DNA from: Cyanophora paradoxa CCMP329
Lineage: Eukaryota > Plantae > Glaucophyta
NCBI GenBank assembly: GCA_004431415.1
Contig: QPMI01000022.1
Coordinates: forward strand, 1-64,000
Length of the DNA stretch: 64,000 nucleotides
Reading direction: 5' to 3'
The position numbers and the translations under genes are program-made. Each line of letters opens with the position of its first letter. Position 1 is the first letter of the stretch. The notes beneath the pieces are model-generated. The model was not told where the DNA came from. It did not search any database and worked only from the letters and a program-made list of their open reading frames with translations. This document shows positions 7,996 to 43,877 of this stretch, in pieces.

Positions 7996-8862
7996 TTATC
8001 TTCTCTTACATTTGATTAACATTTTCTTTTTCTTAGGCGAAATTTGCGAAAGTTTGGGGATACCTTCAAGCTCACGCTCAAATTTGGATAAAGTTCGACA
8101 GACAGTTGTCGAATCTTTGACAGGCGGCGGTTTTGATGCTTGCTCTTCTTGTTGTTTGCGCTTCTTTTCTTCAAAAGCCGCCCGCTTGTGGAATTTAGTA
8201 AACGGATGTTCATCGATCATATCGGCTTTTTCGACCCACCATCGCACAGAATACCCGGTATTATCGTGAATGATCGCTTGGTAGCTATGACAGAATTCTT
8301 GGAACATGCGCTTAAAACTCTCTTTATCCATGTTCCCGAACTCTTCGTGATATGCTTCAAACTCTCGCATGTTTGACCAGCTTAGGAATATGATATACTC
8401 CGCATTGCTGCGAATGATCGTTGAAAGCTTTGTTAGTTTCTGCGATATTAAAGCCACGGAACAAAACGTATGACGACCTTGCGCCATCAATTTATTTAGC
8501 AAATGATCGCGCGAGAGATCAATAGTTCCCGATTCCAAACAATCGTCGAGCACGATGAGAATATTCTTTGGTTTCTTACCCGCAATGATAGCCTTTTTGC
8601 GGGCTTCTATGATCGACTCTACGTATTCCGGTTTCCAGGTGTCATGTACTTCGTCTGTTATTTGACCCCAGAAACCGTTAAAACTCGTAGGACAGAAAAC
8701 CAGAACATACGAGATCTGGTCTTCGAGTTCTTTGATCAGCCACTTTAAGAATACCGATTTACCACAATTGGTTTTCGCCAATAGGAGAAATCGTGCGGGA
8801 AGTTTCACCCTCTGTTTCGGGTTCCATTCTTCGAGATCTATGGGCGTCGTCCCTTTTTGCAT
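7996..8862 (-). CDS. A32/FtsK-HerA family DNA packaging ATPase
   Basis: Walker A LLAKTNCGKS, Walker B ILIVLDD, QGRH arginine finger and ISQ motif. Likely start is MQKGTT at 8,862. Confidence 0.92.
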   Translation of the reverse strand: MQKGTTPIDLEEWNPKQRVKLPARFLLLAKTNCGKSVFLKWLIKELEDQISYVLVFCPTSFNGFWGQITDEVHDTWKPEYVESIIEARKKAIIAGKKPKNILIVLDDCLESGTIDLSRDHLLNKLMAQGRHTFCSVALISQKLTKLSTIIRSNAEYIIFLSWSNMREFEAYHEEFGNMDKESFKRMFQEFCHSYQAIIHDNTGYSVRWWVEKADMIDEHPFTKFHKRAAFEEKKRKQQEEQASKPPPVKDSTTVCRTLSKFERELEGIPKLSQISPKKKKMLIKCKRR

Positions 8863-8920
8863 TCTTTCACTATAAAAACAATAGAAAAATAAGACTGAAT
8901 GTGGTAATCGCACGAATTCC

Positions 8921-10232
8921 TCATGAAGATACTCTGCGAATACCATCAGCTCCGATTATCATGATATTGTGAGCGAGCGCAATGCATTGAATTTGCATCT
9001 TCTGATAAGCGGCACCCGCATACCACTCCTCATTACCGACTCCACCGGCTGTGACACCATTGAATTCGAAGACCAGATCGAACGCCGATGTGCCTGTGGC
9101 ATCGATGTAGCCCGTGTTCTCTTGGTTGAGAAGCGACGCCTTTCCGTTTCCAGCACCGAAGTAAATGCCAGTGAGAGCGGGGTAGCTTGTGCTCTCGGTA
9201 AAGATCGCCGAATTATATTTATCTTGAAGTTCGGTCGCGGCAATCATGAGAGGAAGCGAAGTATTTGAGTAAAGGCGGTTATTGTTGAGTTCCACATAGA
9301 AGTTCACAGCGTTGGTTCTGAGTGCACGAGGAGCCAGAACCGAGAGAGTTCCGTTGTTAACCTTCGTCTTCGCGTTTTGGCGCACAGAGAATACGAGAGT
9401 GTGGATGAGACCCGCACCTGTGAGTTGCGAGAGATTGACTCGCGAACCGGAGGCGGTCGGCTGGAAATCTGTGTGTAGGAAACCGATTTCGTTGTAGGGG
9501 ATCGCGATGCCAGTCGATTTAACTCGGGCAATGGTCTCAGATACAACCGCCTCATCGGCATTTACGACCTTGCAAATAACGCGGGGTTTCAGCACTTGAA
9601 GGGAAGCACCACTGTTTACGACCGAAATATTGCCAACATTGTTTACATCCTCAATGATACCATCACCAATCGCCTTGAATTCGATTTCGACCACGATCTC
9701 AGAGTTCAGAGCGCAAAGTGGGAACATCGCCTTCTCGAAAGGAGAGGGTAAATCGATTTCGTAGGTTCCACCGACAGTGTTACCAGCGGTTCCGACAAGA
9801 CCACCGACATAGCGAAGTTTCTTATCAAGTTCGCCCTGTTCAGTCATCAGTAGAAAATACTGGGTGACGAAATCCTCCGGGACAACATAGCGGAATGAAG
9901 CGTGAGAGATTTCGATGCGCTTAATCAGCGATCCAATGACGCGAAGGTAGCCAGTAGTTCCAGCGACACCATTCGTGAGATCAGTGAGGGTGATCGGTTA
10001 AGATCGAGTTGCAGCGCGAGACCATTCAGGAAATGGTAGCGGGGATTTTGAAGACAACTCGGTTGCCGAGAGCGCTGGGTGGCTCAGTGTCGGGGGCGAC
10101 CAGAACTCGAAGTGGCTTAGTGCCAGAGGACGTTCCAATGACCAGCGACTTGTTTAGGAAATAATCCTTGTAGTCATCGGTGGTGAGCATAGATTTCAGC
10201 GTTGGGCGCTGGAATTGGCTGTTAGTCTCCAT
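8921..10232 (-). CDS. Double jelly-roll major capsid protein (two 1-nt frameshifts at ~9,997 and ~10,042)
   Basis: Joined ~437 aa: VVFKIPRYHFLNGLALQLDL...GSLIKRIEISH...IDLPSPF...FPLCALNSEIVVEIEF. Lies between the ATPase and the pentons. Confidence 0.78.
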
Positions 10233-12075: not shown

Positions 12076-13569
12076 TCACACGTAGTAGCCCTCGAAATCA
12101 ATTCGGCATGCCGAAGCTACATTCGTAGTAAGCACCCAGATTACGAGTGTTCTCACAGATCTCGGGTTTGCTAAGAAATGTTCGTCGGGTTCTACACTTC
12201 CGGCTATTTGATTTGCATTGGTAAACACTCTCGTCGCGCCGGCTTCTGTGTATGTAACAAGCGCCGAAACTCCCGGAGTTAATTGGTAATCGATCTCAAA
12301 CGTTTTAATGTAGTTTCCATTCGCAGCCGGCTTCATTTTTATAGAGGAAAGCATAAACAGACGCGGAAAATCAATGCGTAAATAATTGCCTCCCGACCTA
12401 CTACCTTGCGGCGGGTTTGTAAATCCCACCCACCCCGTAGCATTTGACCAGCGGGCATTGGAGGCTGTGCCGAATTCCGCAATAAAGGCGCTATTATCGA
12501 GCGGCACCCAGTTAGACTCCGGGGGTGCGCTTACATCTGTGCACCCGGACAGATTAATAATGGGAACGTCTCCCTCTGATATATTCATCGTCAGCACTGA
12601 ATACATCGCATTAAAATACGTTTGCTGTGCGGAAACAAACGCGAGCGCTTCCGTTTCCAAATATTGCAGGTGCGTCGTTGTGATAGTATCGAGGGTCATT
12701 TTATCTTTCGGTAAAGGAACGCTCAGCTTATAGTAGCGATCGTAATTCTGATCATCGTTTCTGGGTAAAAGTTCCATTAGCTTTACGTGGGCGTTTAGAT
12801 CGCTCGACTCTAAGAACATGCTGAGAATTGGCGATCCTGTGGCGCTTAGCATCCATTGCACGATCCCCCAATTTTTCATGGTGTCATACGAATATCCCGC
12901 GGTTGCTTTATCGGCGTCTTGGACGTGACCCGCCGTAATCGAGACCACGATAAGCTCCTCCTCGCAAGAGTTTCCGAATAAAGTGCGGGCAAATGTGTAG
13001 CCGCAAACCCCGGGCGAATTATTTCCACTCATGCAACCATCGATTAAACAATATGTTCTTCCGGCGACTGTGACTTGTTTCGGCTCGAAATAGGTCGGAG
13101 CAGCCGAGGTAGCCCTTGCAGCATCGCGCACAAGCATCCCATTAATGTCTTCATCGTTGCTTGAAATAAAAACGGGGGACATTAAGATCGTGTCAAATGC
13201 AGTCACGATGGTTGGTTTATAGAGATCCGCCATGGTCGCTGAGCCGCAGAGTTCCAGAGCCACAGCTTCTAAGTTAGTTGCTTCGTACTTTGGGCGCTGT
13301 ACAATCGATGTAAGCACTCGTGGATTCGCGAAAATCAGCGGTAGTTTCGCTTTGTAGAGCGCCAGAATATCAGTAGCAGTATATTTAGGGGCGCCATCGG
13401 TTCCCTTGATATTCAAAAGGAGCGCGATTAATCCACCTGTGGATGTTCCCGCAAAGCAGTCGAATAGCTGTTGGATTCGTTTACCGGTTTGGGCTTCAAT
13501 CTGTGCCAGTATAGCAGCCTCGATTATTCCACGCGACCCTCCACCACTCAGACATAAAACGGTCTTCAT
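12076..13569 (-). CDS. Patatin-like phospholipase with C-terminal discoidin (F5/8 type C)-like domain
   Basis: LSGGGSRG, GTSTG, ATSAAPTYF and IDGC motifs. C-terminal WVG...YLRIDF...YIKTFEIDY...RTLVIW...RIDFEG. Confidence 0.88.
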   Translation of the reverse strand: MKTVLCLSGGGSRGIIEAAILAQIEAQTGKRIQQLFDCFAGTSTGGLIALLLNIKGTDGAPKYTATDILALYKAKLPLIFANPRVLTSIVQRPKYEATNLEAVALELCGSATMADLYKPTIVTAFDTILMSPVFISSNDEDINGMLVRDAARATSAAPTYFEPKQVTVAGRTYCLIDGCMSGNNSPGVCGYTFARTLFGNSCEEELIVVSITAGHVQDADKATAGYSYDTMKNWGIVQWMLSATGSPILSMFLESSDLNAHVKLMELLPRNDDQNYDRYYKLSVPLPKDKMTLDTITTTHLQYLETEALAFVSAQQTYFNAMYSVLTMNISEGDVPIINLSGCTDVSAPPESNWVPLDNSAFIAEFGTASNARWSNATGWVGFTNPPQGSRSGGNYLRIDFPRLFMLSSIKMKPAANGNYIKTFEIDYQLTPGVSALVTYTEAGATRVFTNANQIAGSVEPDEHFLANPRSVRTLVIWVLTTNVASACRIDFEGYYV

Positions 13570-13612: not shown

Positions 13613-16600
13613 ATGTCGTTCCTGAATCCGCGACCAGATGCACGAGTTATTAATTCGACCACTCAGATAGAGGACACTGATCAGGTAAACACTGAAATTC
13701 GCGGGTCTCTGAGAATAAATTACAATGCAGACCGCGAAGATCCAGTCAGTGGGACACCGAGCAGACCCGCAGCTTTGCAGTTAATGAACGTCGAGAAAGG
13801 GGATCATAAACTTGGAATCGACTTTTTACTTGATGATAACGAACGAAACAGAGTCGCCAGCATTCAGGCAACCCGCCAGCTACCGAAAACGGTGCGATAT
13901 AATCGCAGGAACATCCCAAAAGCATTCGATAGAGGTCGCTTAAACTTCTTCATTCAAGATGAGAGCGGTTTCCAAAATGCAGCTATGAGAATCGTGGATA
14001 ATAGCACACTTATAGCGGGAGTATCCACACGGAAAACAAAGGTAGAGGTCGTCCATGATCTCTCAGCAGGTAATCTTACGACGAGTAACATTACAGCAAG
14101 TAACATCACTACGGATACCCTAAATGTAAACTCGCTCAACTCCGAGTCGTTTTTCGCCACCAATGTCGCAACCTGTAACCTAAACATCGAATCCTTTGTG
14201 ATTCAGAAGAGCGAATCGGTTCCCAGATAACAGAGGGTGTTTTCACATTAGACCCCGCGAAACCGACCTTAGAAATTGTCGAAAATGGGAACGTTGTGGA
14301 TATAATTGGCGCCAATGCTCCGAATGTGAGATCCTTAGCACTTGATAAAACGACTATATCATTTGCAGAGGAGATTCCGGCTTTTACCACAGAGAAACAG
14401 GCACTGAGAACAGATCATGTTTACATTACCAGAGACAATATAAACGATCTTTTAGGCAAGGACATCGTAAAGGCGTTTTTGGAGTTCGAGAGGAGCAAGA
14501 ACACCAAAGATTCCAGCCAGGATGGAACCCTCACGACCCACACAACCGAGATCGCGGCTTTGCAGTCCGAAATTAATGCACTGTTTGCAGCAGATGGAGC
14601 GCTTGCAATTACCTTAGCCCATATTCTATCGAAAAGGAACATTTACCCCGCGACTGATAACACATACCGAGTTGGTTTATCGAATCTGAGATGGTCAGAG
14701 GTGCATGGAGTTTCCATGTTTGCCTCCAATTTAATCCTTCCATTAAATCACTCACTCCGACCTAATCAGATTCTTACCAATGGTAATGCACTGATCAGCT
14801 ACACCGACTATAATAGTAACCTTTCCCGCTCAGTTTCGCGAACTGAGACCTACACTGTCGAGGGATACCCTCAGCAGCTCGCAAATGGGGTCTATGTCGC
14901 TTATGTAGGCAAACCTACATATACATTCACTTGGGATCAGTTGGGTGTCACAGGTTTCGAGACGAATATACCCACTGTTTCATTGGTGGATCACACTACT
15001 TATTATAATCCTATCTATAACAATAATGAATCTAATAAAGCATTTATCCAAAATGTCACCTCCACAGGGTTTCAGGTTTCGTTTGTCATTAACGAGACAT
15101 ACAATTTACTTATCATCCGAAACAACTCATTGAGTTCCGAAGCTACTATTAGTTTCACTCTTAACATCAATTACATTAGCCCTGTATTCGATAGCAAACC
15201 CAGAGTAAAGGTTTACCGAGATTTACAAGGTAGCAATATCGTGCCCTTCTCACAGAATTTCGATCTTGGGGCGAATTCTTTAAGGTGGAACACAGTTTAC
15301 TCTTTGAGTGCAAACACCTGTAATATTGTAGTCGCAGGTTCATCGGCTACTATTGGAGATCTGACCGCGCCTTTTAGAAAGGAGTATCTTAAAGAGCTGT
15401 ATATAACAAAGTCTGATTTACCAGATGCTATTTCGTTGGTACTCTCCCCGACTCCCAGCATATCATACCACAATGTGAAAGACACAAGTAATGTAGTGCA
15501 GAGTGGAAGCAAAGTATTCCAGGCATCCGAAATAGGATCGGTCTCATATAGATATCTTGCAGGGGTTCCAGCGAATTTTAATTTCACATTTGAGACACCA
15601 TTTGTTTCCCCTCCTACTATTGAAATAACAGACACGAATTTGTATGTGGTCAATGATGGGTCAGCTACATCACTTCAAAATGCACCAGCCGGCTACTCCC
15701 CATTTGTTGCAACTAACATAACAACCACCGGCTTTACACTTGTAGGAAATGCAACAGTGACATATGCTCTAACATCATACCCTGTTGGGTTGTATTTTTC
15801 GAAATTTAATCTCTCTGTTATCCCAGCAGTGTCCCTTGCTCCTCCCTTTACTATCAGTTGGAAGGCAACAGGAACTATTCCGCGATTTGACCCCGAAGAT
15901 CGATTAAAAATAAGGTATCCTCTCGATGTTACAGACATTCACACTACGAGGATCAATGGGCAGAATTTCGTGTTTAATGGAACCAATGCTACTCTGATCG
16001 ATAATCGAGTAACGAATAATTACTTTTTCGATTCTCGATACATTAATACTTGCAACATTGTCATACATAAAACGTTTGAGGATCGCAGTAAGACCTTAAC
16101 AGTCACCTTGCCCACTCACTCGAATGTCTCAGATGGATTTTACTATTATCTGTTAAATCGCTATTACACCTCTTATATTCCATATCCTTCTGAGACTGTC
16201 AGCATGAGCTATCCCAAAGTCACCCTAACATCGACCAATGCTGACTTCTTTGGATCCACAGACTTCATGAGAGACTTCTTTTATTTTACATCCTCCACAG
16301 ATGGTCTCTTAGTTTATTACTCTTACAAATATGAGTCTATTGCTACCCAAATCGAAAGCCACCCAAACACTGATGTGATCACAGCAGGCGATAAGAAATA
16401 TATAAAAACCGCTTCCCCATGGGTTTGCACTGTCCGGCTCGATGACAGATACACTCCTAACCTAAATAACATTGGATTGCACTCGACATGCAATATTTAT
16501 GTGCAAGGTGCGATTTCGGCTTCGAAGTACTTTGAGGGTGGAAATTGTGATACAGGACATAGGTTGCTATCGCGAAATGGACTCTTTGAGTCATTCAGTG

Positions 16601-17325
16601 GGACGGCTCTACCGCCTTTTATCAGGGACACAGTCTATGATACCACATGCAATATTTGGGTGTGTCGATCTGTGAGCAATCCACCTGTGACACAGGAATT
16701 ATACAAGTATCTCGCAGATACCTATGGTGCAATCTCAGGATCCTCCACAGGAAATCCAGCGACGGCTCCTATCGTGTTTGCGAATGCATACACAGCGCCA
16801 ACCTCATTAGCAGGGTCGACGGAACCGCCCCCAGATTCAGATCCTAACTTGCCTCCTGATGAGTCAGACCCACAGACCCCACCTACCACTGATCCTACAA
16901 CACCTAATAATCCCACAAATCCTACGAATCCAGTCGGAGCACCGGGAACTGATCCAGGAACGTTAGTGCTTATGATTCTCTTGCCGATTCTCGGTGCTCT
17001 TGGGCTTGTGCTTGCATACAAATTCCGAGCTTTGTGTTGTGCATGCATAGACAGAACCATTGCAGGAGCAGGTAATAAATACTCCACACCTGAGCTGAAT
17101 GTGACCCAAACAGCCGAAGGAGATGTGGGCTTAGAGGTGAGGTCAGCCGAGGGGCATGGTCTTAGTGTTGTGAGAACTGATCAACCACCAGCAAGTAGGG
17201 CAGCACCCAAAAAATCGCGAGCAGAACGAATGGCTGAATCAATAATAAAAGATAATGCAGACTTTATGGCGGAAATGGCACAGCGAGAAGGGAGAATATA
17301 TGAACATGTTCCAAATGTTATGTAG
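13613..17325 (+). CDS. Large fibre/adhesin-like protein with C-terminal transmembrane helix (one frameshift at ~14,180)
   Basis: MSFLNPRPD ORF joins the 1,009-aa ORF by a 1-nt shift. Repeated TCNI/TSNI, PATDNTYRVG...RW and FTFETPFVSPP motifs, a P/T/N linker, then LVLMILLPILGALGLVLAY (~16,963-17,019). Confidence 0.72.
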
Positions 17326-17363: not shown

Positions 17364-20300
17364 ATGACGGAACCCATAGTAGAAACGACAATAAAGAATG
17401 CTGTATTGGATAATAATTTTTATATAACCCACGCCAATATACCCAGTGAATCCAATGACCTGATAGTAGATCTAAAAGGGTATGTGATGGGAGCTATGGC
17501 TTCCAACCTGTGGAATGACATTTTTGGTTACGAGTTTGGTCACATATATGACATAGCAAATGGGATTGGCTATGTGGATGCAATGGCAGGAACAGCCTTT
17601 CGAAATCTAAATTGCAACTGTGTGGGAGGGTGGATGTTTCAGATCTGTTCAAATGTCGATCCTACTATTGATCCAGCTACTGTGACCTTTGATTGCAATC
17701 TATTCGCCCCTAAAACCATTTTCTCCATCACTTGCAACCTTGTATGTTCAGATGTGCCCATTGTGGCACCTATAATTGGGGCAAGTAACATTTATATACA
17801 AAAAATGCCTGTGGCTACTCAAAACTTTGTTTCGTCTAACTATCTATCTCTTGTTGGTGGGACAATCACAGGAAACCTTACAGTAAATAGTAATATTTAC
17901 AGTAGCAATATAGAGACCAGTAACCTAAAAGTGAATGGAATTCTTACAGTTGGTTCATATGCGTTTACTACATTGCAAGAGTTGAACAAAGATTACTACC
18001 AAATAACAGCCAGCAATGATCCAGCTTCAAATATTCCCAATTGCATTTTTGCATGGAAAGCATCAGGAACAGAAGGTCAAAGTGCAGGTTCTACACTTCT
18101 TTATAATAGAGTATCAAGTTCGATCCCATCGCTCACGGTGAGCGCCACAGGCAACCCTTTTATGCTTCCAATATATCTACAAATAATCAGATGAGTTTAA
18201 CATGCGCTTTGAATACCTCAGTCACAGCATCTTCAATAGTCAATGGTAGAATAATAGATTGGTCGCAAGGTTTGACATATTTCTATGTGGGTAGATACCA
18301 TCCCACAAACAGTTTATCACATGCTCACATAGATATTTCAAAGACAGTTACTCCTTCGAGAATTATTAAATATGGAGCGAGATTCTCCACCACATTAGGG
18401 ACAACTGATTTCATCATTAATGGGGTCAATCAGACTCAAATGGCTTTTACAATTCCTTCTCTGATTAATAAATGGTATTATGCAGATCAAACACTTACAT
18501 CAGACAGCTATTCAGTTGGATTAAATGGTGTCGATATTGGGACTGTTACAGGAGTAAATTACTTACCTGATTCAACAGTGACTACTTTTAGAATCGGAAC
18601 CCTTTTTAGCGGTAGTGTTAGTGAAGTTATTGTTTTCAACAGAGCATTAACCACAGCAGAAAGGCAACAAGTAAGGTATTACATTCAACAAATGTATGGA
18701 TTCCCAATTACTCAACCTCTGACCATTTACAGAGGTTTAAAGATCACATCACCCGAAACAGTAATTGATTATCTCACAGTAACAAGTAATGCAAATTTAC
18801 CACATCATCCAACGTCGAATGTGGTTCAAGGTTGGATACAAAACCACACACACACGAAAGCGCAAATTACAGATTTCGCCCATACTCACACCAAAGATCA
18901 GATCACAGATTTTGCCCATACTCACACCAAAGATCAGATCACAGATTTTGCCCATACTCACACCAAAGATCAGATCACAGATTTTGCCCATACTCACACC
19001 AAAGATCAGATCACAGATTTTGCCCATACTCACACAAAAGATCAGATCACAGATTTTGCCCATACTCACACCAAAGATCAGATCACAGATTTTGCCCATA
19101 CTCACACAAAAGATCAGATCACAGATTTTGCCCATACTCACACAAAAGATCAAATAACAGATTTCGCCCATACTCATTTATGGGAGCATATCACAAATCC
19201 TCCCTTAACCTTCCCACCTGATTCACATACTCATGATTATTCTGAAATTACAAACTCTAACCACAGGCACCCATGGAGCGAAATAGATGAGCAACCAAAA
19301 TTCGCATCAGCAGGAAATTTATTAACAGATTTCCAATTTGGTGTAAGTCTCTACCAAAAGATAGACATTGCCGAAAGGTTACAATTAAATGACTATTACG
19401 TTAATCGAAAAGGAATTGAAGCAGGCACCACAATGGATGGCGAATTATACATTAAACAACCTTCAAGATCTCAAATGGTTTCAGCAGGTGGGGTGGGGGT
19501 TATAGACACCAAACCAGGAATCTTTTTGACAAGTTATTATAATGATGATATCCCATTAACAGCAGGTTTACCACCACTTCCATTAGATCCTGTGAGTTAT
19601 GATGATAAAGACGCCATCTTACAAGTGAATGTTACAGATGTAAGCGCAACCGATGGATCAAGACCGAAAATAATATTTAGTCGCTCCAAATTCAATTACG
19701 CACCTCTTGCAGGACAACCAAAAGATGATTTCGGGAAATGTGAGATGGCGTGGATCAAAACAACAACAGGTGGCGCCTTAGAAGTCAATCAGAGAATGGC
19801 GGCGAAAAACTTACACAATGAAACCCTTTCGGGTGTTGTAACAGATGATTACCTTGAAAGCAAAAATTATGTAGATGATACAGAACTTGCAAATATCCTC
19901 GAAAACTACGTGACAAAACCAGAACTTGATGTATATGTGACTGAACCTGAACTTAACTTAGCACTATCAAATTACCTCCCTCTCAAAGGTGGAACCATCG
20001 CCAGCAACTTGGTGGTGACAAGCAACCTTACTGTGGGTGGAAAGATTAAAATGGGAACCAATAGCTATTTAGAATCTTTCAGTGAAACGTATTATAGAGT
20101 TACAGCAAGCAGTGACCCAGCTTCACAAATTCCGAATTGTCTTTTTGCATGGAAAGCATCAGGTGTTCATGGTGAATCGGCAGCCACTTCCAATCTTTTT
20201 AATAGAGTCCCAAATTCTTTGATTCCATCAATTAACGTGGGTTCGGGAACCAGTTCGTATTTTACATCAAATGCAGCAATCAACAACCAATTCACTATAA

Positions 20301-22243
20301 CAACTCCTTCCGGAACCAGTATGTCCGCATTTTCCTATCCAAATGTAACAATTGATTGGTCATCAGGACTCACATACTTTGTAATAGGTAAATACCACCA
20401 AACATCCTCTGTTGTTGATCATCATTTACGAATATGGAAGACAGATTTATCAAACAGAAGTGTTCAGTTTGGTGTTAAGTCGAATACAATAATTGGAATG
20501 ACAAGTTTTGCAATAGAGGGAGTCCAACAACCAACCCCTTCTATCACAGTTCCCTCTTTGATCAATAAATGGTATTACATAGACCAAACAATCACTTCTG
20601 ATTCTTATTCGGTAGGTTTGAATGGTGTAGATATCCAAACTGTTACAGGGACTAACTATTTACCTGATTCCATAGTAAACTTTTTTGGATTTGGACAAAT
20701 TGTTGGAGGTAGTATTGCTGAAATTATAGTATTCAACAGAGCATTGACAAATGATGAAAAACGTGATGTGAGGTATTATATTCAACAAATGTATGGCTTC
20801 CCAAATACTCAACCAATCTTAACTCGGGAAATTCTTAATATTGTAGGAAAAGACAGATTAACTCTTAGCAACTTGCACATGCCCATACACACTCACACAA
20901 AATCACAAATAACAGATTTTGACCACACACATTCACGATTACAGATACCCGATTTTGCACATCTTCACACAAAAGATGAGATTTCAGATTTCGCCCATAC
21001 TCACACAAGAGATCAAATAACAAATTTCGCCCACTCTCATTTATGGGCGGAGATCACAGACAAACCAACATTTGCTACTGTTGCAACAAGTGGAAATTAT
21101 GATGATTTAATTAATAAACCAACATTCTCTACTCCTACTGACTTTGATGCTATAAGTGTTCTTGGCGATTATTTTTTGAAATCCGCTGATTGGACAAATG
21201 AATCATATATAAGTTACTACACGGGAGCATACACAGCAGCTCAAAATGATTTAGTATGTAATAGCTACATGTATTGGGATATTCCAACAGGAATGAAAAC
21301 ATGCTACATTTTTTATATAGCGCACTTCAACTGTCGATATTTTGACATTAAAGGGTTTAATATAAATGAAGGTTTTCAAACCACAATGCGAGTAAATGCA
21401 TATGCACAATCATACAACTTAAATACATTCAGGCTATATGTTGCTGTAAATTGCGAGATGTTCACAAAAATTGGTGTTCAAGGTGTTTTAGGAAGAATAT
21501 ACTTACTTGGTATTATTGGTTGGAGCAAAAACCCAGCTTCGTCAGGAAATAGCGGTTATCTCCATTGGGATAATATCTATGGAAAACCAACAGCTACTAA
21601 CACAGTTGGCGCACACAGTCATTCAAAGACCGATATTACAGATTTTGCCCATACTCACACAAAATCGGAGATCACAGATTTCCCAACCTTAGACCCGTTT
21701 GTAGCCAATACGATCACAGGTAACACAATTACAGCCAACAATACCATGTATGTGGGATCCGGTCAAATTTACCAACCGAATGCACCTCTTTATTTAGAAC
21801 AATGGTTTTTCCACAATTCCACAAATATATACGATAAAACGTTATTATGTCGGGGAAATGCTTACGCAAGAGCATATTATGCAATGGATGAAACAGATAA
21901 TACAAAGATCGCAAAACTTGTTTCAGAACAACGGGTCAATAAAGACCAGTATATTCAAACAGGGAGTTTCTCAAAATCTTTAACAATCACAGGTCCAGGT
22001 CATTGGGGATTTCCACAGGTTGTCACATTCCCAAAAGCATTTGCGGCAGCCCCAGAAGTGGTTCTCAATCTTAAACAAGGGTATAATGGTGGTTCATATG
22101 TATTGGTATATGGTGTCACAAGTTCCACAACAACAACATTTACTATTCATGCAACAATTTCGGCAAATAGAGAATACAATGAAAGCATTGGACTTTTCCA
22201 CTATCAAATGAGTTATATTGCAACAGGAAAGATGGTAGCATAA
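17364..22243 (+). CDS. Tail-fibre-like protein with two LamG-like domains and HTH(T)K..ITDF repeats (one frameshift at ~18,158)
   Basis: ORFs 17,364-18,194 and 18,191-22,243 join by adding one T; the joined region aligns with the internal second copy (YY..TAS.DPAS.IPNC.FAWKASG...EVIVFNRALT..E...VRYYIQQMYG). Also FATVATSGNYDDLINKP and a C-terminal VTFPKAFAAAPEV domain. Confidence 0.8.
18842..19177 (+). repeat. Coding 36-bp tandem repeat (AHTHTKDQITDF x8 plus a variant and a partial copy)
   Basis: gcccatactcacaccaaagatcagatcacagatttt repeated with an exact 36-nt period. Confidence 0.97.
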
Positions 22244-34202: not shown

Positions 34203-37200
34203 CTAGGCTGCGCTAGGCCAGATGTGCTTTCTTCTTCTTCGTGGGATGGGACGCGGCGCGGGGCACTGCGCGGCGCGCGCGCGAGCCCGCGGCTCGGCTC
34301 GGGCACAAAAAGGAGGGGGAGGGGGTCTACGGACGCACCGACGAAGGGCTGGATGTTGGGGCCGGGTACGGCTTTCGGGTCGTAGCTCGGGTTGACGGCG
34401 GGCGGCGCCGGCTTGACCTCGGTCCGGTACCTGCGCACCCCCCACTCGCAAATCGATCCGGCATTCGCAAATTGATCCGGGGCCGCACTCGAGGTTGGAC
34501 ACCGCCCAGCGGGCGTTGGCGAGCCGGTCCTGCTGCAGTAGGATGACCCGCAGCTGCGCGCGAAGCGAAGGGAGCCGCTGTGAGCGGCGGAGGCGGCGGT
34601 GGCGGAGCGCCGAGGGAAGGGGCGCCCGCTTCCCACCTGGCTCCGTATCTCTGAGTAGTCCGAGCGCTCGTGGAGGTTGAACCTGCGCGGGGGAGAAAAA
34701 AGCGCCTCGCGGGGGGTACGTCGGAAAGCACGCGGGGGGTACGCGCCTTCGCAGGAGGTCGTCCAGGTCGGCCATCTTCCCCAGGAGCGGGTCCTGTACC
34801 CCCCGACCATCAGAGATGAAAGCGAGGAGGGGGGGGGTACGGGAGCGCACGAAGGAGGCGTAGTACCCGTATGGGGGCTCCCCCTCCACCATCTCGAGAT
34901 GCTTCTTCACGCTGAAGCAGCGCTCGAGGTACCCCTGGAGGGGGGAAGAAAGAACGTCGGCGTCGGCCTCCTCATCTCTACGGCGGCCCAGTACGAGTCT
35001 AGTCTAGGCGGCTCAGCTAAGGGCGGCTCTAGACTAGTACTCTAGGAATGAGCGGCGGTCGGGCCCCCGCCAGCCGAATACGACTCTTTTTAAAGTAAGG
35101 AGCGGCTCTGGTCTAGTCTCTCGATTCGAAGGGCGGCTCTGGTCTAGAACTCTAGGGAGAATCCAAGGGCGAATCTCATGGCGGCTCTAGCCTAGTCTCC
35201 CGGCGGCCCCATAGCGAAGGGCGGTTCTACTCTAGTGTTATTCTAGGAAGGAGCGGCGCACCAAGGCAAAGGGCGGAGCTTAAGGGCGGCTCTAGTCTAG
35301 TCGAATCTAACGCCCTAACGCCCGCAAGGAAGGAGCAAACAAGCCTCGCTCCAGTCTAGTATTATTCTAGGAAGCTTTAAGGAGTGGGGCGCGCTCGCCT
35401 CGAGGGGCGCGCTCGCCTCGAGGGGCCCTCGCCTCGAGGGGAGCTCTACTATTAGGGGAGCTCTACTCTAGGGGGAGCTTTTATTCTAGGAGCTCTGCTC
35501 TAGTCTGGGAAGGAGCAAGCGCGCTCGCCTCGAGGGGCCCGCGCCAGTCGAAGACGACGGCGAGCAGCTCGCTCCAGAGCTCCGCGAAGAGCACCCCGGG
35601 CATCGCCTGCGGGGGGGGCGGGGGGGCAGAGGGGGCGGGGGCAGAGGGGGCGGAGACCGAGTCAGAGTCGGATTGGCGAGGGAGGCTCGCTTCGGGGCGG
35701 GGGCGGGGGCGGGGCTCGCTCGGTCAGATGGGAGGAGGGGCGAAGGGGCGCGAGATGGGAGCCAGCGCTCGAGGACTTGCTCGAGGAACTAGCCTCTAGC
35801 TCGGTTCTTCTGGGTTGGCGCAGCCCTCTAGAAAGTTTCTTCTAGTTCTAGTTTGCCTCTTTCTAGTTCCGGGGGCGCGGCGCGGCGCGCGCTCGGTCGC
35901 GAGTTCTCGAAGCTCGGTCCTCCATCTAGCTTCAAGCTCGGTCCCCTATCTAGGTTGGCGCGGTTTCCTGTTCGTTCTAGTTCGTTTGTTTCTAGTCCCC
36001 GGCGCGTCCCTCGGCCCGGGGGCGGGCGGGCGCACGGGGCAGTCGGCGTAGAGGCCGTAGTAGCGGAGGACGACGGCGAGGACCGTCTCCGGCGCCACGT
36101 CCGCGTCCCCCTTCAGCAGCGCGACCTGCGGGGGGGGGGGGGGGGGGGGGAGGAAGTTAGGGGAGGGGGTAGGGGAGGGGGGTAGGGGATAGGGGATGCC
36201 TGCTTGCGGCGGCGCGTGTTGCGCGCGTAGTTCTGCTGCCCCTTGAGCTCGTGCTGCGGGCGCGGGGTCAGGTCAGGCAGGTCCGGGTACGCGAGGGAGG
36301 GGGGGGGGGGGGGGGGGGAAGAGTGTTGGAGCGGGCGGCCCAACTTGAACTCTAAGAAGTTCTCGGCTCGGCACAGGGGGGCGCACCATCTTGAACTTGC
36401 CCCCGCCGCCGCCGCCGAGCATGGACTCCACCGGCAGGTTCGTGTTCACCTCCGTCACTGGGGCGCCTCTCCCTCAGCGAGGCGCGGGGGCGGGGCGGGG
36501 GCGGAGCTCAAGGCAACGGCTTTCTTTTGGCTTCACTGGGGGCGCCCCTTCCTCAGGGGGCGGAGCGAAGGCGGAGGGCGCGGCGCCGCTCGTCGCTCCA
36601 GAGGCTGAAACGAAGCCCCAAAGCAGCTAGCTTTCTAGCAGCCTTCTTCTAGTCGAGGCCGGGCGGGGGCGGGGGCCGGGCCGGGGGGCGGGGCGGGGGC
36701 GCACGGTCGATGAGGCGGACGGAGCGCGGGGCCATCGCGTTGGCCAGTAGCACGGCTGCCGGCGCGGGGCGGGGTGCGTCAGGGAGGAGGGCGGGGCGGG
36801 GCGAGCGGGCGGGGCGGATCTAGGCTAGAGAAGATAGATAGGATATGACTTCATCCATTTCGCCTAGATCGCTTGCTGGCACGGATTCCTGGGGATCAGC
36901 TGGAGGACGAAGAAGCGGGGCGTGGTTAGCTTAGGCGTGGTTCTATGTCAGCTTTGACATCCGTAGTGTGAAGGCCTCAAGAGCTCAGACGCAGTGAGGT
37001 GACCGGGACTGGAGATATCAGACGTAGTTTTGGAGATCTCAGACCTAGTTGTAGGTCCAGGGCAGGGCGGCCCGTGCAGGACTAAGGGGGGCGGACGGGG
37101 CGCACGGTCGTCGGCGAGGGAGCCCTGGCGCAGCGCGGCGTTCATGGGCGAGTGGTGCGCTGCCATCCGCTCCATGCACGCCCGCTCCCGCGCGCGCTGA

Positions 37201-38218
37201 AGGAAAGAGGAGTAGATAAGATAGGAGGCGGAGGCTGGGGCGGCGCCTCTCGATAGACGAGAGGGAGGAAAGGGGGATAGATAGATAAGGGGCGGGGATG
37301 GGGGCGGCGGTGCCTTGCCTTTCGCTGGAGCTCCTTCTTGCGGACGGAGAGGCCCTTCTGCATGCCGTCCGCCGCGAGGATCTTCTCCACCGTCTTCGCG
37401 CTCAGCATGCCTGCCGGAGTGGGATGAGGAGGAGGAGAAGGAGGGGCCGTGAGCGAGCGTCGCGGGCTCGCGCCTACTCTTCTGCTACTACTACTCTTCT
37501 ACTAGTAGAAGGAGCAGCGGCCGTAGCTACTCTCTCTCTACTCTACTCCTCTCTGCTCCACTCTTCTACTACTCCGCTCCTCTTCTCTCTCTCTCTCTTC
37601 TGCGCTACGCCACGCACCGAGCATCCCGATGCCGAGGGAGGCGACGAAGATGGCGAGGGCGCGGCCCCACGTCGACTTCGTCACCAGGTCGCCGTACCCT
37701 GGCGGGTGGGGGGGTTCAGAGAAGGGGGTAGCGGGGGAGGGAGGGGAGGGGAGGGGGGGGGGAGGGGGATGTCCGCCCGCACCGACGGTCGTGGCTGCGC
37801 GGCGCAGAACGACCCGTCAGATTCGGAGGGGGTGGGGGGGTAGGTGCGTGACTCACCGGTGACGAAGACGAACCAAAGGGCGCCCCAGACAGTCTCGAAC
37901 CCGGGGCTCGCGTACTGCTCGTGCGTCTTGATCGAGAGTGCCTGCGGGGCGGGAGAAAGGGGAGGGCTCAGGGCGGGCGGGGGCGACGGGGAGATAGGGC
38001 GGGGCGGGGTGCGCCGGGTACGCACCGCGAGGAGAACCAGGACGAACATAAAGACGGCAAGGGAAAGGCTGCGGGCTCAGAGTAAGAAGAAAGAAGGAGA
38101 AGGAGAACAAGAGGGGGGTACGGCGCACAAGGGGCGGTCGGCGACGACGAGGGCGACGCGGCGGTTGCGGGAGACGCGGTAGTACATCCGCATGACGCGC
38201 GTCACCTGAGGGGAGGTT

Positions 38219-38250
<32 letters not shown>

Positions 38251-41200
38251 ACGCGCGCGCCTTGAGGGTGCGGAGGACGACGAGGAGGGAGACGAGGCCC
38301 GGTACCCCCTGGTAGGAGCCCGAGAAGACCACAGTGACGCCGGGGAGGTCCGTGATCACTGGAGGGGGTTGAGGAAGGTCGGAAGGAGTACAAGGATAGG
38401 GGCTCTTAGGAGGTGCGGGGCGGGGGGAAAGAAAGAAAGGGGGTACGCACGCGCGGGGAACTCAAACCAGTTCCGCTCAGCGAAGTGCAGGACGGAGGGC
38501 TGCCGGCCCCGGTCCCGGTACACGATTCTGGGAGAAGATGAGGGAGGGGGGAAGAAGGCGGAGGGGGATACGCCAACGAACCGGGCGGTAAGGTCGAGCC
38601 CGATGAAAGTGGAGACGAAGAGGTCCGTCCAGAGCAGCGCGTGCCGCTCCTTGATCTGCGGCGCCACCGGATGACAAGGGATGAGACTCGCGAAGCGCAC
38701 AATGTAAAAATTGCTTATTTATGAATGGACTGGGTCTCTAGAGTTACGGACCTGCTGGGCGTAGGGGAGCCAGGGGGCGATGGCGAGCAGGACGCTGCCG
38801 GGCGGGGCGGGGCGGGTGTCAGGCCTGCAGGGCCCGGGCTCGGGGGGCGGGGAGGTGCGGGGCGGGGCGGCCGCTCGCCTGAAGCATATGACGAGGAGGA
38901 TGAAAGCTTCGAAGACGCCCCGCAGCACCCGCTGCGCGATGTCAGGGAAGGGCGCTTCGGATTTGATCGCTGATTCGATCCGGTCCTAGGGGAGGGAAGG
39001 GCGCGCCACGACGAGCTGGCGGATGTCGGGCTTGGGGAGCGTCGCGTCGTCCTCCGCGTTCGCCAGCGCCTGTGAACGAAGTGTCGGATGCGAAGAAGGC
39101 GGGAGGGGAGGGGGGTACGGGGACGGACCAGGGAGGCGGCGGCGGCGGGGCCTAGGTAGCGCTTGATCTCGGCGTTCCCGCGGAAGCGGAAGATGTGCGG
39201 CACGTGGAGCCTGCGCCGAAAGCCGTCAAGAAGGAGGGGGGGAGGGGGAAAGGGGGTACGGACCTGTGGCCCTGGCGGTCCCGAGCGGCGAGCTGGCGGC
39301 GCCGGCGGATGGCCCGGATGCGAAAGGCCGCCACGCCCGAGGCCGTCAGGAGGGCCACGAGGGACCCGTACACGGAGTCTGCGAACGAAGTGATTGATTC
39401 AGCTTTGAAGCTCGAAGAGGGGGGGGGTACGGCGCACAGAGGGCGGCGTAGTCGGAGGGGCAGGCGTTCAGGGTCCCCGACGTCACGCAGGGGCCCGAGG
39501 CGACCACCAGGTCGGCCTGCCGGGTACGCAGTCATTTGAGAGGTCGGAGCGGGCCAGGAGGGGTACAGGGGCGCGCCTCGTCGGCGATGCCGTCGTTGTC
39601 CGAGTCACGGGTGAAGGCTCCCAGGAGGGGGAACCGGTCCTCCACGTCTGGAGGGCGGGGTACCATCGCAAGGGGCATACATGTTGGAGGGGGTACGCGC
39701 ACCGAGGAGGCCATCCCCGTCCTTGTCCAGGGCCAGGCGGTGGAGGCTGGCGCCTCCTCCGGGCTGCAGAGAGACGCGGCTAAGAATAGCGAAGGAAGGA
39801 AAGGGGGGGGGAAGGGGGGGGACGAAGGCACCAGGGGGGAGGCCCACGCGAGGAGAGTACGGTCCAGCGAGACGGCGAGCACCGAGCCCGGCTCGAAGTC
39901 CAGAGCGGCGCAGAGGAGGGGCGGCTCGCCCCGGGGTACGCTCGACGGGTCCAGGAGCCGGAGCGTCGAGGCGCCCGCCGCCGGGGCCTGCGCAGGGGGT
40001 ACGTACGCGTTGGCGCCTGTCGCACGGCTAGCGGGAAGGGGGATACGCGCCTCGGTGTAGAGGAAGCGGCCGGCGCTGGCGGCCTGGAGGGCGAGGGGGT
40101 GCGCGGATTTGGTAAGCGGGAGGTCCCGCCAGGAGGCGGCGGCCAGGGAGTAGGCGCGGAGCATCCAGGAGGAGCGGTCGGCGGTGGAGAGCTGGGCGAC
40201 GAGTGTACCCCCCGAGAGCGCGAAGTTCTCGAGGCGAACGAAGGGGCCGGAGGCGTAGGCGGCGGGGGGGAAGGAGCGCGGGGCGCGCTCGGGCAGGGAG
40301 AGGAGGGCGAGGGTGACGCCGAGGCCGCCCGAGGGCTCGGAGAGGGCGAGGCTGGAGGGGTCCAGGGACACGCGGGCGGAGACCTCGGCCCAGGCCAGCG
40401 CGCACGCGCCTGCCGCCCCGCCCGTCGGTCCCGGCCGGCTCAGGGGCACAGAGGCGGGGGGTACAAGCGCACCAAAGCCGTCCGGCGCTCTGTCCATGAC
40501 CTGCGGGGGTAGGGAATCGCCTCGGTAAGGGCGAAATGGGGGGGGGAGGGGGGGGGGTAGGGGCGCACCGGGTGGAAGAAGCTGGCGATGCGCGTGGGGG
40601 GGTGTACGGGCGTGGCGAGCTCGGAGCTGCCTGTACCCCTGTGGAAGAAGTGGACGGCGGATGTACCCCGCGCGGGGTCGAACTGCGAATAGGCAATGTA
40701 GGGCCCGCAGGCGCTGGGCTCCAGGCGGGATGCCCCCGGCGGCAGGGGCCGCAAGCTCAGCTGCCCGGGGTACGCGTCACAAAAAGGAATAAAGGAGAAT
40801 GGGGATAGAGGCGCACCGGGGCTACGATGCCGAGCGCCCTGTCGAAGTACGTGACGTCGGTCCCGTTCCCGCGGCGCTCGGTCCAAACGACGGCGTCCCC
40901 GTGGGCCGAGAGGTGCCTGGGGCGGCTCAGAAGAGGAAAGAAAGAAGAAAGGAGAAGGAAGAGAAGGGAAGGAAGGACCGAGGCTCGGACGAGTCGAGGC
41001 GCAGGAGGCGCCTGCGCTCGGGAAAGGACTGCTGGTAGACCTTGTCCAGGCGCGCAGGCGGCGCGAAGTCGAAGCCGAAGGGATCTGCGGCGCGAAGAAG
41101 CGGCGAGCAGCGCCGAGCAGCGCTTAGTCTGAGCCCCGCGCGGCGCGGCGCGGTGCTCGGGGCCTGGGGCAGCACCGTCCTTGGGGAGCTGGGCGAGGAT

Positions 41201-41779
41201 CTCCGCGTAGGGCTGGAACACGGCGCCGAAGCTGCGCGCAGGCAGGGCGGGACGGGGCGTGGCGGGGCGGTCGGCACGCGGGCAGAGATTCGAGCTTGCA
41301 GCGGGGAGCGGTGCCCACCCTTCCGAGTGCAGAGCGAAGACCTTGGTGCCCTGCGTGGGGTCCGCGTCGATGTAGAAGACGGTGTCGTTGTCCAGGAAGA
41401 GCTGGCGGCCTGCAGGGGCGCTTAGGAGGAGCGCGCCCCGATCCGAGAGGGGGATGCCCGCCGCATGCGCACCGAGCTGGAAGGGCTGGCGCGCGAGCGC
41501 CATGCTCGGCCGCCAGAGAGTGCTGTTCCACGCAGCTGCCGGGTAGGCGCCCCGGGTGTCCTCGCCGATCCAGTCCAGGTTCACATCGTTGAGGAAGTTG
41601 CACCGGCGCAGGCCCTGCCGCGCGCTGGCCGCATCGGTCACCGAGCAGGCCGCCTCTTGCGTGCCCCAGCAGCCGCTGGCTGCGTTGTGCTGTGCAGAGG
41701 CGCTAGCTAATAGCAACAGAGCTGCTAAGGCCGCCAGCGCGCGGGCTGGCTGCCCGGAAAGGTGCCTCCGCAACTGCAT
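34203..41779 (-). CDS. Voltage-gated K+ channel (6TM) fused to a large extracellular domain; many exons; 3' end approximate
   Basis: Manual splicing gives a signal peptide, VVWTERRGNGTDVTYFD, DKDGDGLLDVEDRFP...DSDNDGIADEAD, TM + RIRAIRRRR, then S1-S6 with S4 LRTLKVTRVMRMYYR and pore WFVFVTATTVGYGDLVTKSTWGR. Confidence 0.85.
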
Positions 41780-41993
41780 CACGCTTGCGGTCACACTGCC
41801 ATCGGATCGGCCCTTTCAGCTGAGCTGATGCGGCTTAAAGAATCCGCACACGCCGAGGCCGCCTGGCGGCTCTTGACAAAGCTGTCCGACTCACAGTCCG
41901 AGCTCTTGTGGGGTACAGTGACGAGCGAGACCTCAAACGAACGTGCAGCTCCCGCCGCTGCTGGCTGACACAGACCGAGAGTCCGGGGCTGCA

Positions 41994-43877
41994 ATGAGCG
42001 AGCCTGCGGTGCGACCTCCTGGTCCTTGCCCGTGCTTCCCACACCGACGGATCTTGCCGACAGGGTGATAACGAAAGCGTGCTGCGGAGTGGCCGACTTC
42101 TTCGACTCAATGAGGACCCGCAGCAGGAAGCCGCAGCCGACCGATCTCCGCGGCCGGCGAAGCGTCCGCGCCGCATCCAGACGGGACCGCACCTTGAAGC
42201 AAGCGAGGGTGCCGACGGCAACGCATACGTGATCAACAGCCTCCCAGACGAAATCCTGGAGCTGATCTTCCGTTTCGTCAACGAGCCGATCCTGAGCTGC
42301 AGCTCGCTGCAGTCGGGCGCGGCGCTCACCTGCCTCGACGTTTGCCGCAAGTGGCGCCGCGTGAACCAAAAAGTCTTTGAGCTGTGCGTTTCAGCTGATG
42401 GCGCGACTTGAACCCGCCGCCACAGCCCGCGTTCGTCTGACACGCGGCCGCCGGCGCAGGATTGACGTGGCGTGGCGCTCCGATGGATTTTCCACCGGCC
42501 GCGGCCGGTACAGTGTAGACCCGCTCTACCCGCCTCGCCCTGTCGTGGGAGCAGACGGTCACGCGCGCTCGCATCCTGCAGGAACGTCCGGCACGGCTTC
42601 GCCAGCAAAAAAGCCTTTAAGGCCTTTAAGGGCGAGGCATTCATCAGCCTAGAATGCCTGCACCCGGCTTTCAATGGCACGCACGCGGAGTGGGTCGGCT
42701 TTGTTCGGCACCACGAGCGCCGCATCGCGTCGGCCCTCGTGCCGGGAGCTGCCGCCGCCCGCCTCGAACAGCTCACCCGCGGCCCACTCCACACGCTCCA
42801 CCTCACCGTATACTGCGCCGAGCTCGACGCGTTGCCGGACTTCGTCGACGCGCACCTCCCGCGGGACTGGAGCCCTCGCGTCCTCTCCCTGCACCTCCCG
42901 CTCGTCCGCGACCCCTCGCCGGCAGTGTTGAAGCTGGGCCCGGCCCTCCTCGGGCGCGCCCCGGGCCTCGAGGTGCTTCGCCTCGCCTACGGCCCCGGCA
43001 TCCCGCTACCCGTCGCCATCCACGCCGTGCGCGCGGCTCCTTTCGCGTACCCCGCCGCTCCGATTTGATCCGCCCCGCGGTCGCAGCTGCCGGCGGCAGA
43101 GAAGCTACACACCCTCGGGGCGCGCCTCATTTTCCCACAGGACACGCCTGGCGCGGCGTCGCTCGGGCGGTTCCCCTCGCTCCGCGCCGTCGAGCACGTC
43201 GACCTGGGCCCCCTCGAGGGCTGCGAGGAGAGGCTCGTCCTGGCGACCCTCGAGGCCCTCGCGGCCCGCCCCGTCCTCTGCCGCAGCCTCGCCCTCCCCT
43301 CCTTGGCCCCCGACTGCGAGCGGCTCCGCGCCGCCCTCGGCGCCGTCTTCCGGCCGGGGGCCCTCCCCGGCGGCCCCGCCGGCACCCGCCTTCTCCTCAG
43401 GCTCTCCAGCCTGTCCGACTTCGGCGGCTCGCCCCTCCTGAGCTCGGTCCTGCGCGGCGATGAACAGTGCGTGTACCCCGCCCGTAAAGCGAGGGCCTGC
43501 GTGTGCTGACCACGGGGAGCGCCTGCGCGCGAAGGCTTCTCATCGCGTCGCGCCCGCCGCCACCTGCCAGCGGCGACCGCTTCTCGCAGCTGGCGCTGGA
43601 GGCGCCCCGCGCGACGCTCGCCGACGCCTTTGCCCTCCTTCGTGCGCCCCCGCCTGGCCCTAGGCCCGAGCCCGAGCCCTAGGCCTGAGCCCGCCCGCCC
43701 CGTTCGACTCGCGGCGTCCCGCAGAGGGCACGGCCTCGTCGCTCAGGCGCCTGGCTCTGTACGAGGTACCTTTCGTGGAACACGGTGGTACCCCCGAGCA
43801 AGGTGCCACGCATCTTACCCCCCCCCCTCCCCCTCGAAACCCCCTCTCGCCTCCCCATCATTCGCCCCCAATACACC

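Follow-up and report, generated by a model that had tools for sequence, protein, structure and literature searches.

A K+ channel family, apparently undescribed so far, with a predicted receptor-like propeller ectodomain in Cyanophora paradoxa and other eukaryotes

Few membrane proteins have been studied as thoroughly as the voltage-gated K+ channels. To our knowledge, their regulatory domains (T1, PAS, CNBD, RCK, and ankyrin) are cytosolic, and in no case does the pore-forming chain bear a folded ectodomain of several hundred residues. The question of whether such a channel exists is raised by a gene on the minus strand of contig QPMI01000022.1 of the glaucophyte Cyanophora paradoxa CCMP329 (assembly GCA_004431415.1), of which we analyzed positions 1 to 64,000 (the window). 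An initial annotation of this DNA had proposed a signal peptide, propeller-like blades, TSP3-like loops, and an extra transmembrane helix fused to a complete voltage-gated channel core. Sequence comparison and fold prediction show a signal-peptide-like N terminus, a predicted beta-propeller, TSP3-type acidic loops, an extra helix (S0), a channel core (S1 to S6), and a family-specific tail on one chain in four lineages.

The Cyanophora gene comprises 38 exons (Table 1) and runs from an ATG at 41,779 to a stop codon at 34,215-34,213 on the minus strand. With splice sites read from the sequence, it forms a single open frame with one terminal stop and a product of 1,136 aa, or 1,140 aa if the exon-4 donor is moved to 40,979. 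A split gene at this place, with a frame kept open by GT/GC-AG splicing, had been proposed and was borne out; its proposed end at 34,203 was not, as that position belongs to another frame. The introns have 28 GT and 9 GC donors, 37 of 37 acceptors are CAG, and the median length is 68 nt. The gene region is GC rich and dense in introns, and this splice pattern fits the short introns and 67.6% GC content given for the Cyanophora genome in the accessible text of PMC6704402. The longest intron (594 nt; window about 35,000-35,560, minus strand) begins with several stretches that nearly repeat the end of the exon before it and its donor site, and these could offer alternative donors. The public model of the gene, tig00000113_g5578.t1 (P0001 in EukProt; 970 aa), agrees exactly with ours for 836 aa, beginning at the start Met and reaching into S6, but lacks exons 26 and 27, directly after S6, and exons 32 to 38, and ends early. 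As a result, the database protein has an incomplete S6 extension and misses most of the conserved C-terminal domain.

Homologues carry most of the evidence that these parts belong together. When the in-frame open reading frame (ORF) at 39,535-40,497 was run with phmmer against 1.84 billion representatives, three proteins came back, all EukProt models of C. paradoxa: P0001, P0002 (tig00020710_g13244.t1), and P0003 (tig00021043_g17612.t1). The paralogue P0002 shows the same order of ectodomain, TSP3 loops, extra helix, and channel core, the last from S1 as far as the pore helix, where the model ends; it is 31% identical to our channel model over 809 columns, and its S4 carries eight charges at regular spacing. 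P0003 consists of the ectodomain and a transmembrane segment and ends just after S0; it lacks both TSP3 motifs in intact form, and its last residues are a duplicated peptide. Truncation of the gene model is the probable explanation in both cases. A metagenome pattern scan yielded an intronless ORF of 1,274 codons, likely starting at Met54, with all parts in the same order (contig Ga0105055_10004638, hereafter L001), and the stem-plus-channel region of that ORF then retrieved four further proteins. The 1,374-aa protein GBG29521.1 of the stramenopile Hondaea fermentalgiana has the whole architecture in a single intronless genomic ORF, two Trinity transcriptome ORFs of Diplonema ambulator (Discoba; 1,236 aa, labeled complete, and 1,445 aa) have the same order, and so does an N-terminally truncated transcriptome ORF of Platysulcus tardus. 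The Hondaea protein bears the automatic database label "subfamily D member 2," a Kv4.2-type name that we regard as a best-hit mislabel, since the protein has no T1 domain and a signal-peptide-like N terminus.

By sequence, the family is thus present in glaucophytes (Archaeplastida), Stramenopiles, Discoba, and one unplaced eukaryotic lineage, that is, in at least three supergroups. The unplaced lineage is represented by L001 and a second metagenome contig (L002), which have 40% GC, are gene dense, and come from an apparently intron-poor eukaryote; the neighbors of the channel ORF there are eukaryotic (ORC1/Cdc6-like, RFC, EDR2_C, an adaptin small chain, and APC-type TPR). Pattern scans of prokaryote genomes and viral contigs turned up no relatives, nor did tblastn in the prokaryote genomes. 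Word-index searches with the Cyanophora ectodomain returned the query itself or nothing, a blank that weighs little given the low sensitivity and length limit of the method. In a six-sequence channel tree, only a weakly supported stramenopile pair (87/88) was resolved; the distribution suggests that the family either arose close to the base of the eukaryotes or was transferred early, and the tree leaves room for both.

Because the same order recurs in the intronless ORFs of Hondaea and L001, the fusion does not depend on Cyanophora splicing. The single-gene reading of ectodomain and channel core put forward initially was upheld by these intronless and transcript-derived homologues, by fold prediction, and by the Cyanophora paralogue of the same architecture. 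The obvious alternative is that gene prediction has merged two neighboring genes, one for a single-pass surface protein and one for a plain K+ channel, or that the Cyanophora copy of the channel no longer works. Several points speak for it: Cyanophora gene models need curation according to the accessible text of Price et al. (PMC6704402), the paralogue model g17612 stops after the transmembrane segment, and this Cyanophora copy has a long branch (1.76). Yet the fusion is found where introns play no part, the five introns across the ectodomain-channel junction are short (53-84 nt) with ordinary canonical sites and an open frame, and the selectivity filter, the acidic residues of S2 and S3, and the C-terminal domain are all intact, so that we consider this alternative extremely improbable. 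Seven runs from two studies, which we guess to be RNA, contained 0.35-0.41 of the 31-mers of positions 35,900-41,850. Transcription of all exons would predict a share of 0.35-0.36, that of the ectodomain side only 0.24, and that of the channel side only 0.12 (standard error about 0.017). This suggests that both halves of the gene are expressed and has no bearing on their joining. On all this evidence, we are highly confident that the fusion into one polypeptide is genuine in Cyanophora.

The channel part is, by sequence, a member of the six-transmembrane (6-TM) K+ channel superfamily. The complete S1 to S6 with an Arg-spaced S4 and a TTVGYGD filter, as initially described, was confirmed by Pfam Ion_trans (E 7e-16) and by Ion_trans_2 above its cut-off. 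The K+ signature of the superfamily, TxGYGD with a pore helix between S5 and S6, is present, and TTVGYGD itself occurs in the Cyanophora gene and in all four non-Cyanophora homologues; in Cyanophora its codons are split over a 12-nt microexon (37,794-37,783, minus strand) and the adjoining exons. S1 to S4 have the hallmarks of a voltage sensor, with basic residues at every third position of S4 and acidic counter-charges in S2 and S3, of which the S2 Asp is invariant. S4 of the Cyanophora gene has four basic residues at this spacing and one more, and homologues have 3 to 8; the S2 charge-transfer position holds Ile in Cyanophora and Phe in most homologues. Against the Protein Data Bank (PDB), the family profile matched KvAP best (E 3e-21), followed by KCNQ, KcsA, and Kv4 (about 1e-14).

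The upstream exons had been read as a signal peptide and propeller-like blades, and both parts of that reading gained support. An 11-aa N-terminal window reaches a Kyte-Doolittle hydropathy (KD) of 2.9 in the Cyanophora gene, and a similar window (2.7-3.1), with basic residues ahead of it, lies within the first 45 aa of all six full-length members. Exon-by-exon Pfam and NCBIfam scans of the gene were nearly blank. AlphaFold 2 (AF2), AlphaFold being one of the checks proposed at the outset for the spliced protein, modeled the propeller with a predicted local distance difference test score (pLDDT) of 65 and a predicted template modeling score (pTM) of 0.73 from six sequences, although pLDDT was only 35 from a three-sequence alignment, and the insertion after blade 1 was poorly modeled. 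VIA-align placed 300 aa of the propeller on CylK (7ron; Z 22.6, root-mean-square deviation 3.3) and also matched the propeller of a Pyrococcus trilobed protease (2gop; Z 21.3); lectin, integrin-alpha, and WD40 propellers came next, with no clear gap in scores. TolB ranked first in Foldseek (E 1e-9), and the best match in the Atlas was an archaeal PD40 cell-surface protein (TM score 0.62). ESM Atlas feature scores were all below 0.9 and serve as leads only. One TIGR04275 blade matched exon 5 (E 0.004). On these models the beta-propeller fold of aa 92-476 is clear, and the blade count is probably seven. A catalytic propeller was considered and set aside, as the S9 peptidase matches span only the propeller domain of those enzymes. 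A profile of the three Cyanophora copies scored 36.6 bits in Hondaea and 9.5 in Diplonema (shuffle maxima, 3.0 and 4.4); judged from sequence, the propeller is homologous across taxa, fast evolving, and barely alignable.

Directly after the last blade come the acidic loops, whose TSP3-like character and place ahead of a transmembrane segment had been anticipated. Two DxDxDGxxDxxD motifs with the bacterial-type TSP3 period, exactly 22 aa apart, are found in six of the seven family proteins, including every channel-bearing one (6/6), whereas composition would lead one to expect such a pair about 1e-4 times or fewer per protein by chance. Pfam TSP3_bac and TSP_3 score 15-16 bits on the loops, below their 25-bit cut-off, and the region is 50% identical to the metagenomic homologue over 54 aa. 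EF-hands were rejected as an alternative: their matches were weak, with E values of 0.006 at best, and TSP3 accounts better for a double motif with 22-aa spacing.

Only about 20 residues separate the last loop from S0, and the Cys pair in between is a probable disulfide. This TSP3-Cys-S0 stem is the best-conserved part of the ectodomain, with 78 bits against non-Cyanophora profiles. The transmembrane segment and Arg-rich cluster predicted ahead of the channel core were recovered as S0 and a basic cluster, with a net charge of -4 ahead and +9 behind in the Cyanophora gene. A hydrophobic helix before S1 with acidic sequence ahead of it recurs in all six channel-bearing members, and the distance from S0 to S2 ranges from 114 to 239 aa. 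Under topology rules, a cleaved signal peptide and one odd extra helix would together set the orientation; from this we infer that the propeller and TSP3 loops face the exterior of the cell or the lumen of an organelle and that the chain is back in the cytosol before S1.

The tail adds a further shared element, a domain of roughly 160 aa conserved in four lineages. A profile built from non-Cyanophora homologues only gave 82.8 bits for the newly annotated C-terminal exons, compared with -0.2 for P0001 and -0.6 for the best shuffle. The domain had no Pfam match and, in a profile search, no PDB match below E 0.24.

How does the family relate to known channels? KvAP and other prokaryotic 6-TM Kv channels (Aeropyrum pernix; 2a0l, 6uwm, and 1orq) share S1 to S6, the TTVGYGD filter, and the lack of T1, and KvAP leads the PDB matches with 79 bits versus 58 for KCNQ, but it has none of the signal peptide, ectodomain, S0, or large tail of the Cyanophora-type channel. 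For NCBIfam NF040645 (K_channel_Meth), whose cut-off is 300 bits, the two members listed scored about 30-34. The BK channel (Slo1, KCa1.1) has a seven-transmembrane (7-TM) subunit with an S0 helix, an extracellular N terminus, and a cytosolic S0-S1 loop, and the family would appear to share this topology, including a BK-type helix before S1 as judged by hydropathy and charge only. BK differs in combining a short extracellular end with a cytosolic RCK1/RCK2 gating ring, in contrast to about 500 aa predicted to lie outside in the Cyanophora protein. We rejected membership in BK because the tail has no RCK match (Pfam; PDB profile search) and BK is not among the 60 best PDB matches; the S0 of the family and that of BK, which is mentioned in the accessible text of PMC12962649, may be convergent.

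Other candidates fared no better. The core resembles that of the Shaker-family Kv1-4 channels (Kv4.2, E about 4e-14), but P0001 and P0007 have no BTB/T1 match in Pfam, the N-terminal region folds as a propeller in the predicted model, the N terminus is predicted to be secretory, and the family alignment contains no PVP-type S6 motif. Channels with a cyclic nucleotide-binding domain (EAG, HCN, CNG, and plant KAT/AKT) were dismissed for want of a cNMP-binding match in Pfam and PDB profile searches, and KCNQ/Kv7, although similar in the core (E 1e-14), because the tail matches neither KCNQ structures nor Pfam. GluR0 and the ionotropic glutamate receptors have a signal peptide and a large extracellular ligand domain, with a K+ filter in GluR0, yet they differ in their inverted pore, their periplasmic-binding-protein clamshell, and their lack of a voltage sensor. 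Archaeal surface proteins of Thermoplasmatota and Methanobacteriota (TIGR04275; PD40 plus TSP_3 clusters) are alike in blade motif, fold, and propeller-then-TSP3 order, but they contain no channel, and their sequence scores fall below cut-offs, so homology is not established; TIGR04275 (beta_prop_Msarc) was itself rejected as an assignment, since its cut-off is 85 bits and individual blades of Cyanophora and Diplonema reach 11-17 bits. TRPW of choanoflagellates, which the accessible text of 10.64898/2026.06.15.732144 describes as a TRP channel and sensory receptor with an intracellular 7-bladed WD40 propeller and limited extracellular surface, is likewise an ancient protist fusion of a 6-TM-superfamily channel to a 7-bladed beta-propeller. 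Membership in TRPW is contradicted by the K+ filter and by the position of the propeller between the signal-peptide-like segment and S0. No description of a propeller-TSP3-Kv fusion was found in the openly searchable literature, which omits most subscription journals, and term look-ups in the accessible text of 10.1101/2025.02.15.638427, PMC6704402, PMC12223298, and PMC12221091 did not find this architecture. The initial impression that the architecture had not been described therefore stands within that literature, and a K+ channel family with a receptor-like ectodomain is apparently undescribed so far.

Judging by its parts, the protein is probably a subunit of a tetrameric, K+-selective, and probably voltage-sensitive channel built like a cell-surface receptor. 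In the tetramer, four propellers would crown the pore on its outer side and could bind an outside partner such as a protein, a glycan, or a surface. The Ca2+-filled TSP3 loops and the disulfide would form a short, stiff stem that passes this binding on to S0. In BK channels, S0 packs against the voltage sensor; if it does so here, the voltage dependence would be shifted, and contact would alter K+ efflux and membrane potential. The rigidly kept stem near S0 beneath a divergent propeller could represent a coupling element under a variable binding surface, which is what a receptor would show, and on this ground we put direct modulation of gating by the ectodomain at slightly short of an even prospect. 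The fuller proposal, a possibly very old eukaryotic family in which binding of an extracellular macromolecule or surface gates the pore directly through TSP3 loops, S0, and a KvAP-like sensor, is one we hold tentatively, as possible rather than probable.

Several observations weigh against receptor gating or its structural premises. The conserved stem is equally compatible with a purely structural stalk, and the topology was derived from hydropathy and charge alone. S0 is only weakly hydrophobic in the Cyanophora gene (KD19 of 1.56, compared with 1.8-2.7 in homologues), and the TSP3 loops have a pLDDT below 50. The blade number depends on matches to 7-bladed structures and our own count, and the propeller of the metagenomic L001 ORF scored a borderline 1.0 bits, a value reached by 2 of 300 shuffles. 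Voltage sensitivity of the Cyanophora channel may also be weak, considering the varying number of S4 charges (3-8) and the S2 Ile.

It is also conceivable that this is an ordinary voltage-dependent K+ channel whose propeller serves as a tether or address, anchoring or clustering it at a cell covering, flagellar surface, or contact zone, or aiding its folding or trafficking. By analogy, a single chain would do here what the LGI-ADAM22/23-Kv1 complex does in animals, where a secreted propeller protein (LGI1/LGI3) organizes Kv1 clustering through ADAM receptors (accessible text of PMC10828548 and PMC5906670); there the extracellular propeller, the ADAM receptor, and Kv are three separate proteins, and homology between the propellers was not detected. 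The animal precedent, the non-catalytic or surface propellers among the nearest folds (TolB and the archaeal cell-surface protein), and the long, unconserved S0-S1 linker all fit such a role, while the stem by S0, strictly kept in length and motif over three supergroups, seems to exceed what a passive tether needs; we consider the tether reading rather unlikely. The stem could instead make the channel a sensor of external or luminal Ca2+, with the propeller as a scaffold and Ca2+ loading of the loops moving S0 and gating the pore, as might be suggested by the acidic loops being the best-conserved extracellular feature, directly ahead of S0, and by their weak EF-hand and TSP3 matches. TSP3 repeats, however, are generally structural elements that stay constitutively Ca2+ loaded at external Ca2+ levels, members of the family come from both fresh water and the sea, where external Ca2+ differs greatly, and the retention of a 400-aa propeller would be left unexplained, which makes a Ca2+ sensor improbable. 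Finally, as the topology does not separate plasma membrane from lumen, the channel could reside in an organelle (contractile vacuole, lysosome-like, or secretory), its luminal domain sensing contents or binding sorting factors; given that the closest structural neighbors are cell-surface or periplasmic proteins and that TSP3 repeats are typical of secreted or surface proteins, again on Atlas leads with scores below 0.9, we regard this as very improbable.

Table 1. Features of the channel gene in the window
Feature	Position	Strand	Size or evidence
Whole gene	34213..41779	minus	38 exons, about 1,140 aa
Exons 1-7	41779-41473, 41409-41319, 41231-41176, 41084-40979, 40916-40817, 40760-40569, 40500-40473	minus	
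Exons 8-14	40409-40051, 39987-39832, 39763-39703, 39647-39577, 39516-39438, 39378-39264, 39210-39129	minus	
Exons 15-21	39069-39007, 38931-38879, 38794-38752, 38655-38582, 38527-38451, 38358-38261, 38205-38129	minus	
Exons 22-28	38068-38026, 37941-37857, 37794-37783, 37698-37618, 37410-37319, 37196-37106, 36755-36705	minus	
Exons 29-33	36457-36387, 36253-36200, 36125-36036, 35606-35529, 34934-34851	minus	
Exons 34-38	34793-34747, 34682-34637, 34553-34489, 34430-34339, 34265-34213	minus	
Candidate optional exon, 87 nt, low complexity, in frame	36518..36604	minus	Present in public model
Signal-peptide-like N terminus, aa 1-29	41693..41779	minus	Basic n-region, hydrophobic core, small-residue cleavage-type end
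N-terminal cap, aa 30-91	41507..41692	minus	Alignment; one Cys conserved across family; low fold confidence
Predicted beta-propeller ectodomain, aa 92-476	39731..41506	minus	AF2, VIA, Foldseek, Atlas, TIGR04275 blade match
Two TSP3-type acidic loops, DxDxDGxxDxxD, over exons 10-12	39508..39730	minus	22 aa apart
Cys pair outside S0	39460..39489	minus	5/6 members, absent in Hondaea
Extra transmembrane helix S0, then basic cluster (positive-inside)	39317..39447	minus	Hydropathy, charge
Predicted cytosolic S0-S1 linker	39013..39316	minus	Length and sequence vary across family
Voltage-sensor domain S1-S4	38173..39012	minus	Pfam Ion_trans E 7e-16, alignment
Pore domain: S5, pore helix, TTVGYGD filter, S6	37385..38139	minus	Ion_trans_2 above cut-off; KvAP
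Family-specific, predicted cytosolic C-terminal domain, aa about 949-1107	34388..36223	minus	Non-Cyanophora profile; missing from public model

Two other features of the window deserve mention. An F-box-like gene (Pfam F-box-like, E 2e-4) starts at 42,079 on the plus strand, and because it lies head to head with the channel gene, with about 300 bp between their starts, the two may have a common short bidirectional promoter. Positions 1-22,300 form an AT-rich block (36-47% GC versus about 68% elsewhere) with intronless ORFs, including one for a Pox_A32-type packaging ATPase (7,996-8,946; E 2e-10), one for a patatin-like lipase (12,076-13,569), and two long fiber-like ORFs (14,296-17,325 and 18,191-22,243) with weak H-lectin/laminin-G matches. 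The gene content of this block suggests a Polinton-like virus endogenous to the alga.

The finding exceeds the first reading of this locus in that it concerns not one gene but a family with members in at least three eukaryotic supergroups, hidden in databases under labels such as "Kv4.2." The family offers an independent case of an S0 helix for comparison with BK, and the Hondaea gene is intronless and can be expressed directly. If the receptor-gating reading is true, the family would embody a mode of K+ channel control for which we found no characterized example in the openly searchable literature, and if the ectodomain gates the pore, it would provide a natural scaffold for ligand-controlled K+ channels. 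For the protists that carry it, the family is a candidate route by which surface contact or macromolecular cues may be turned into electrical signals.

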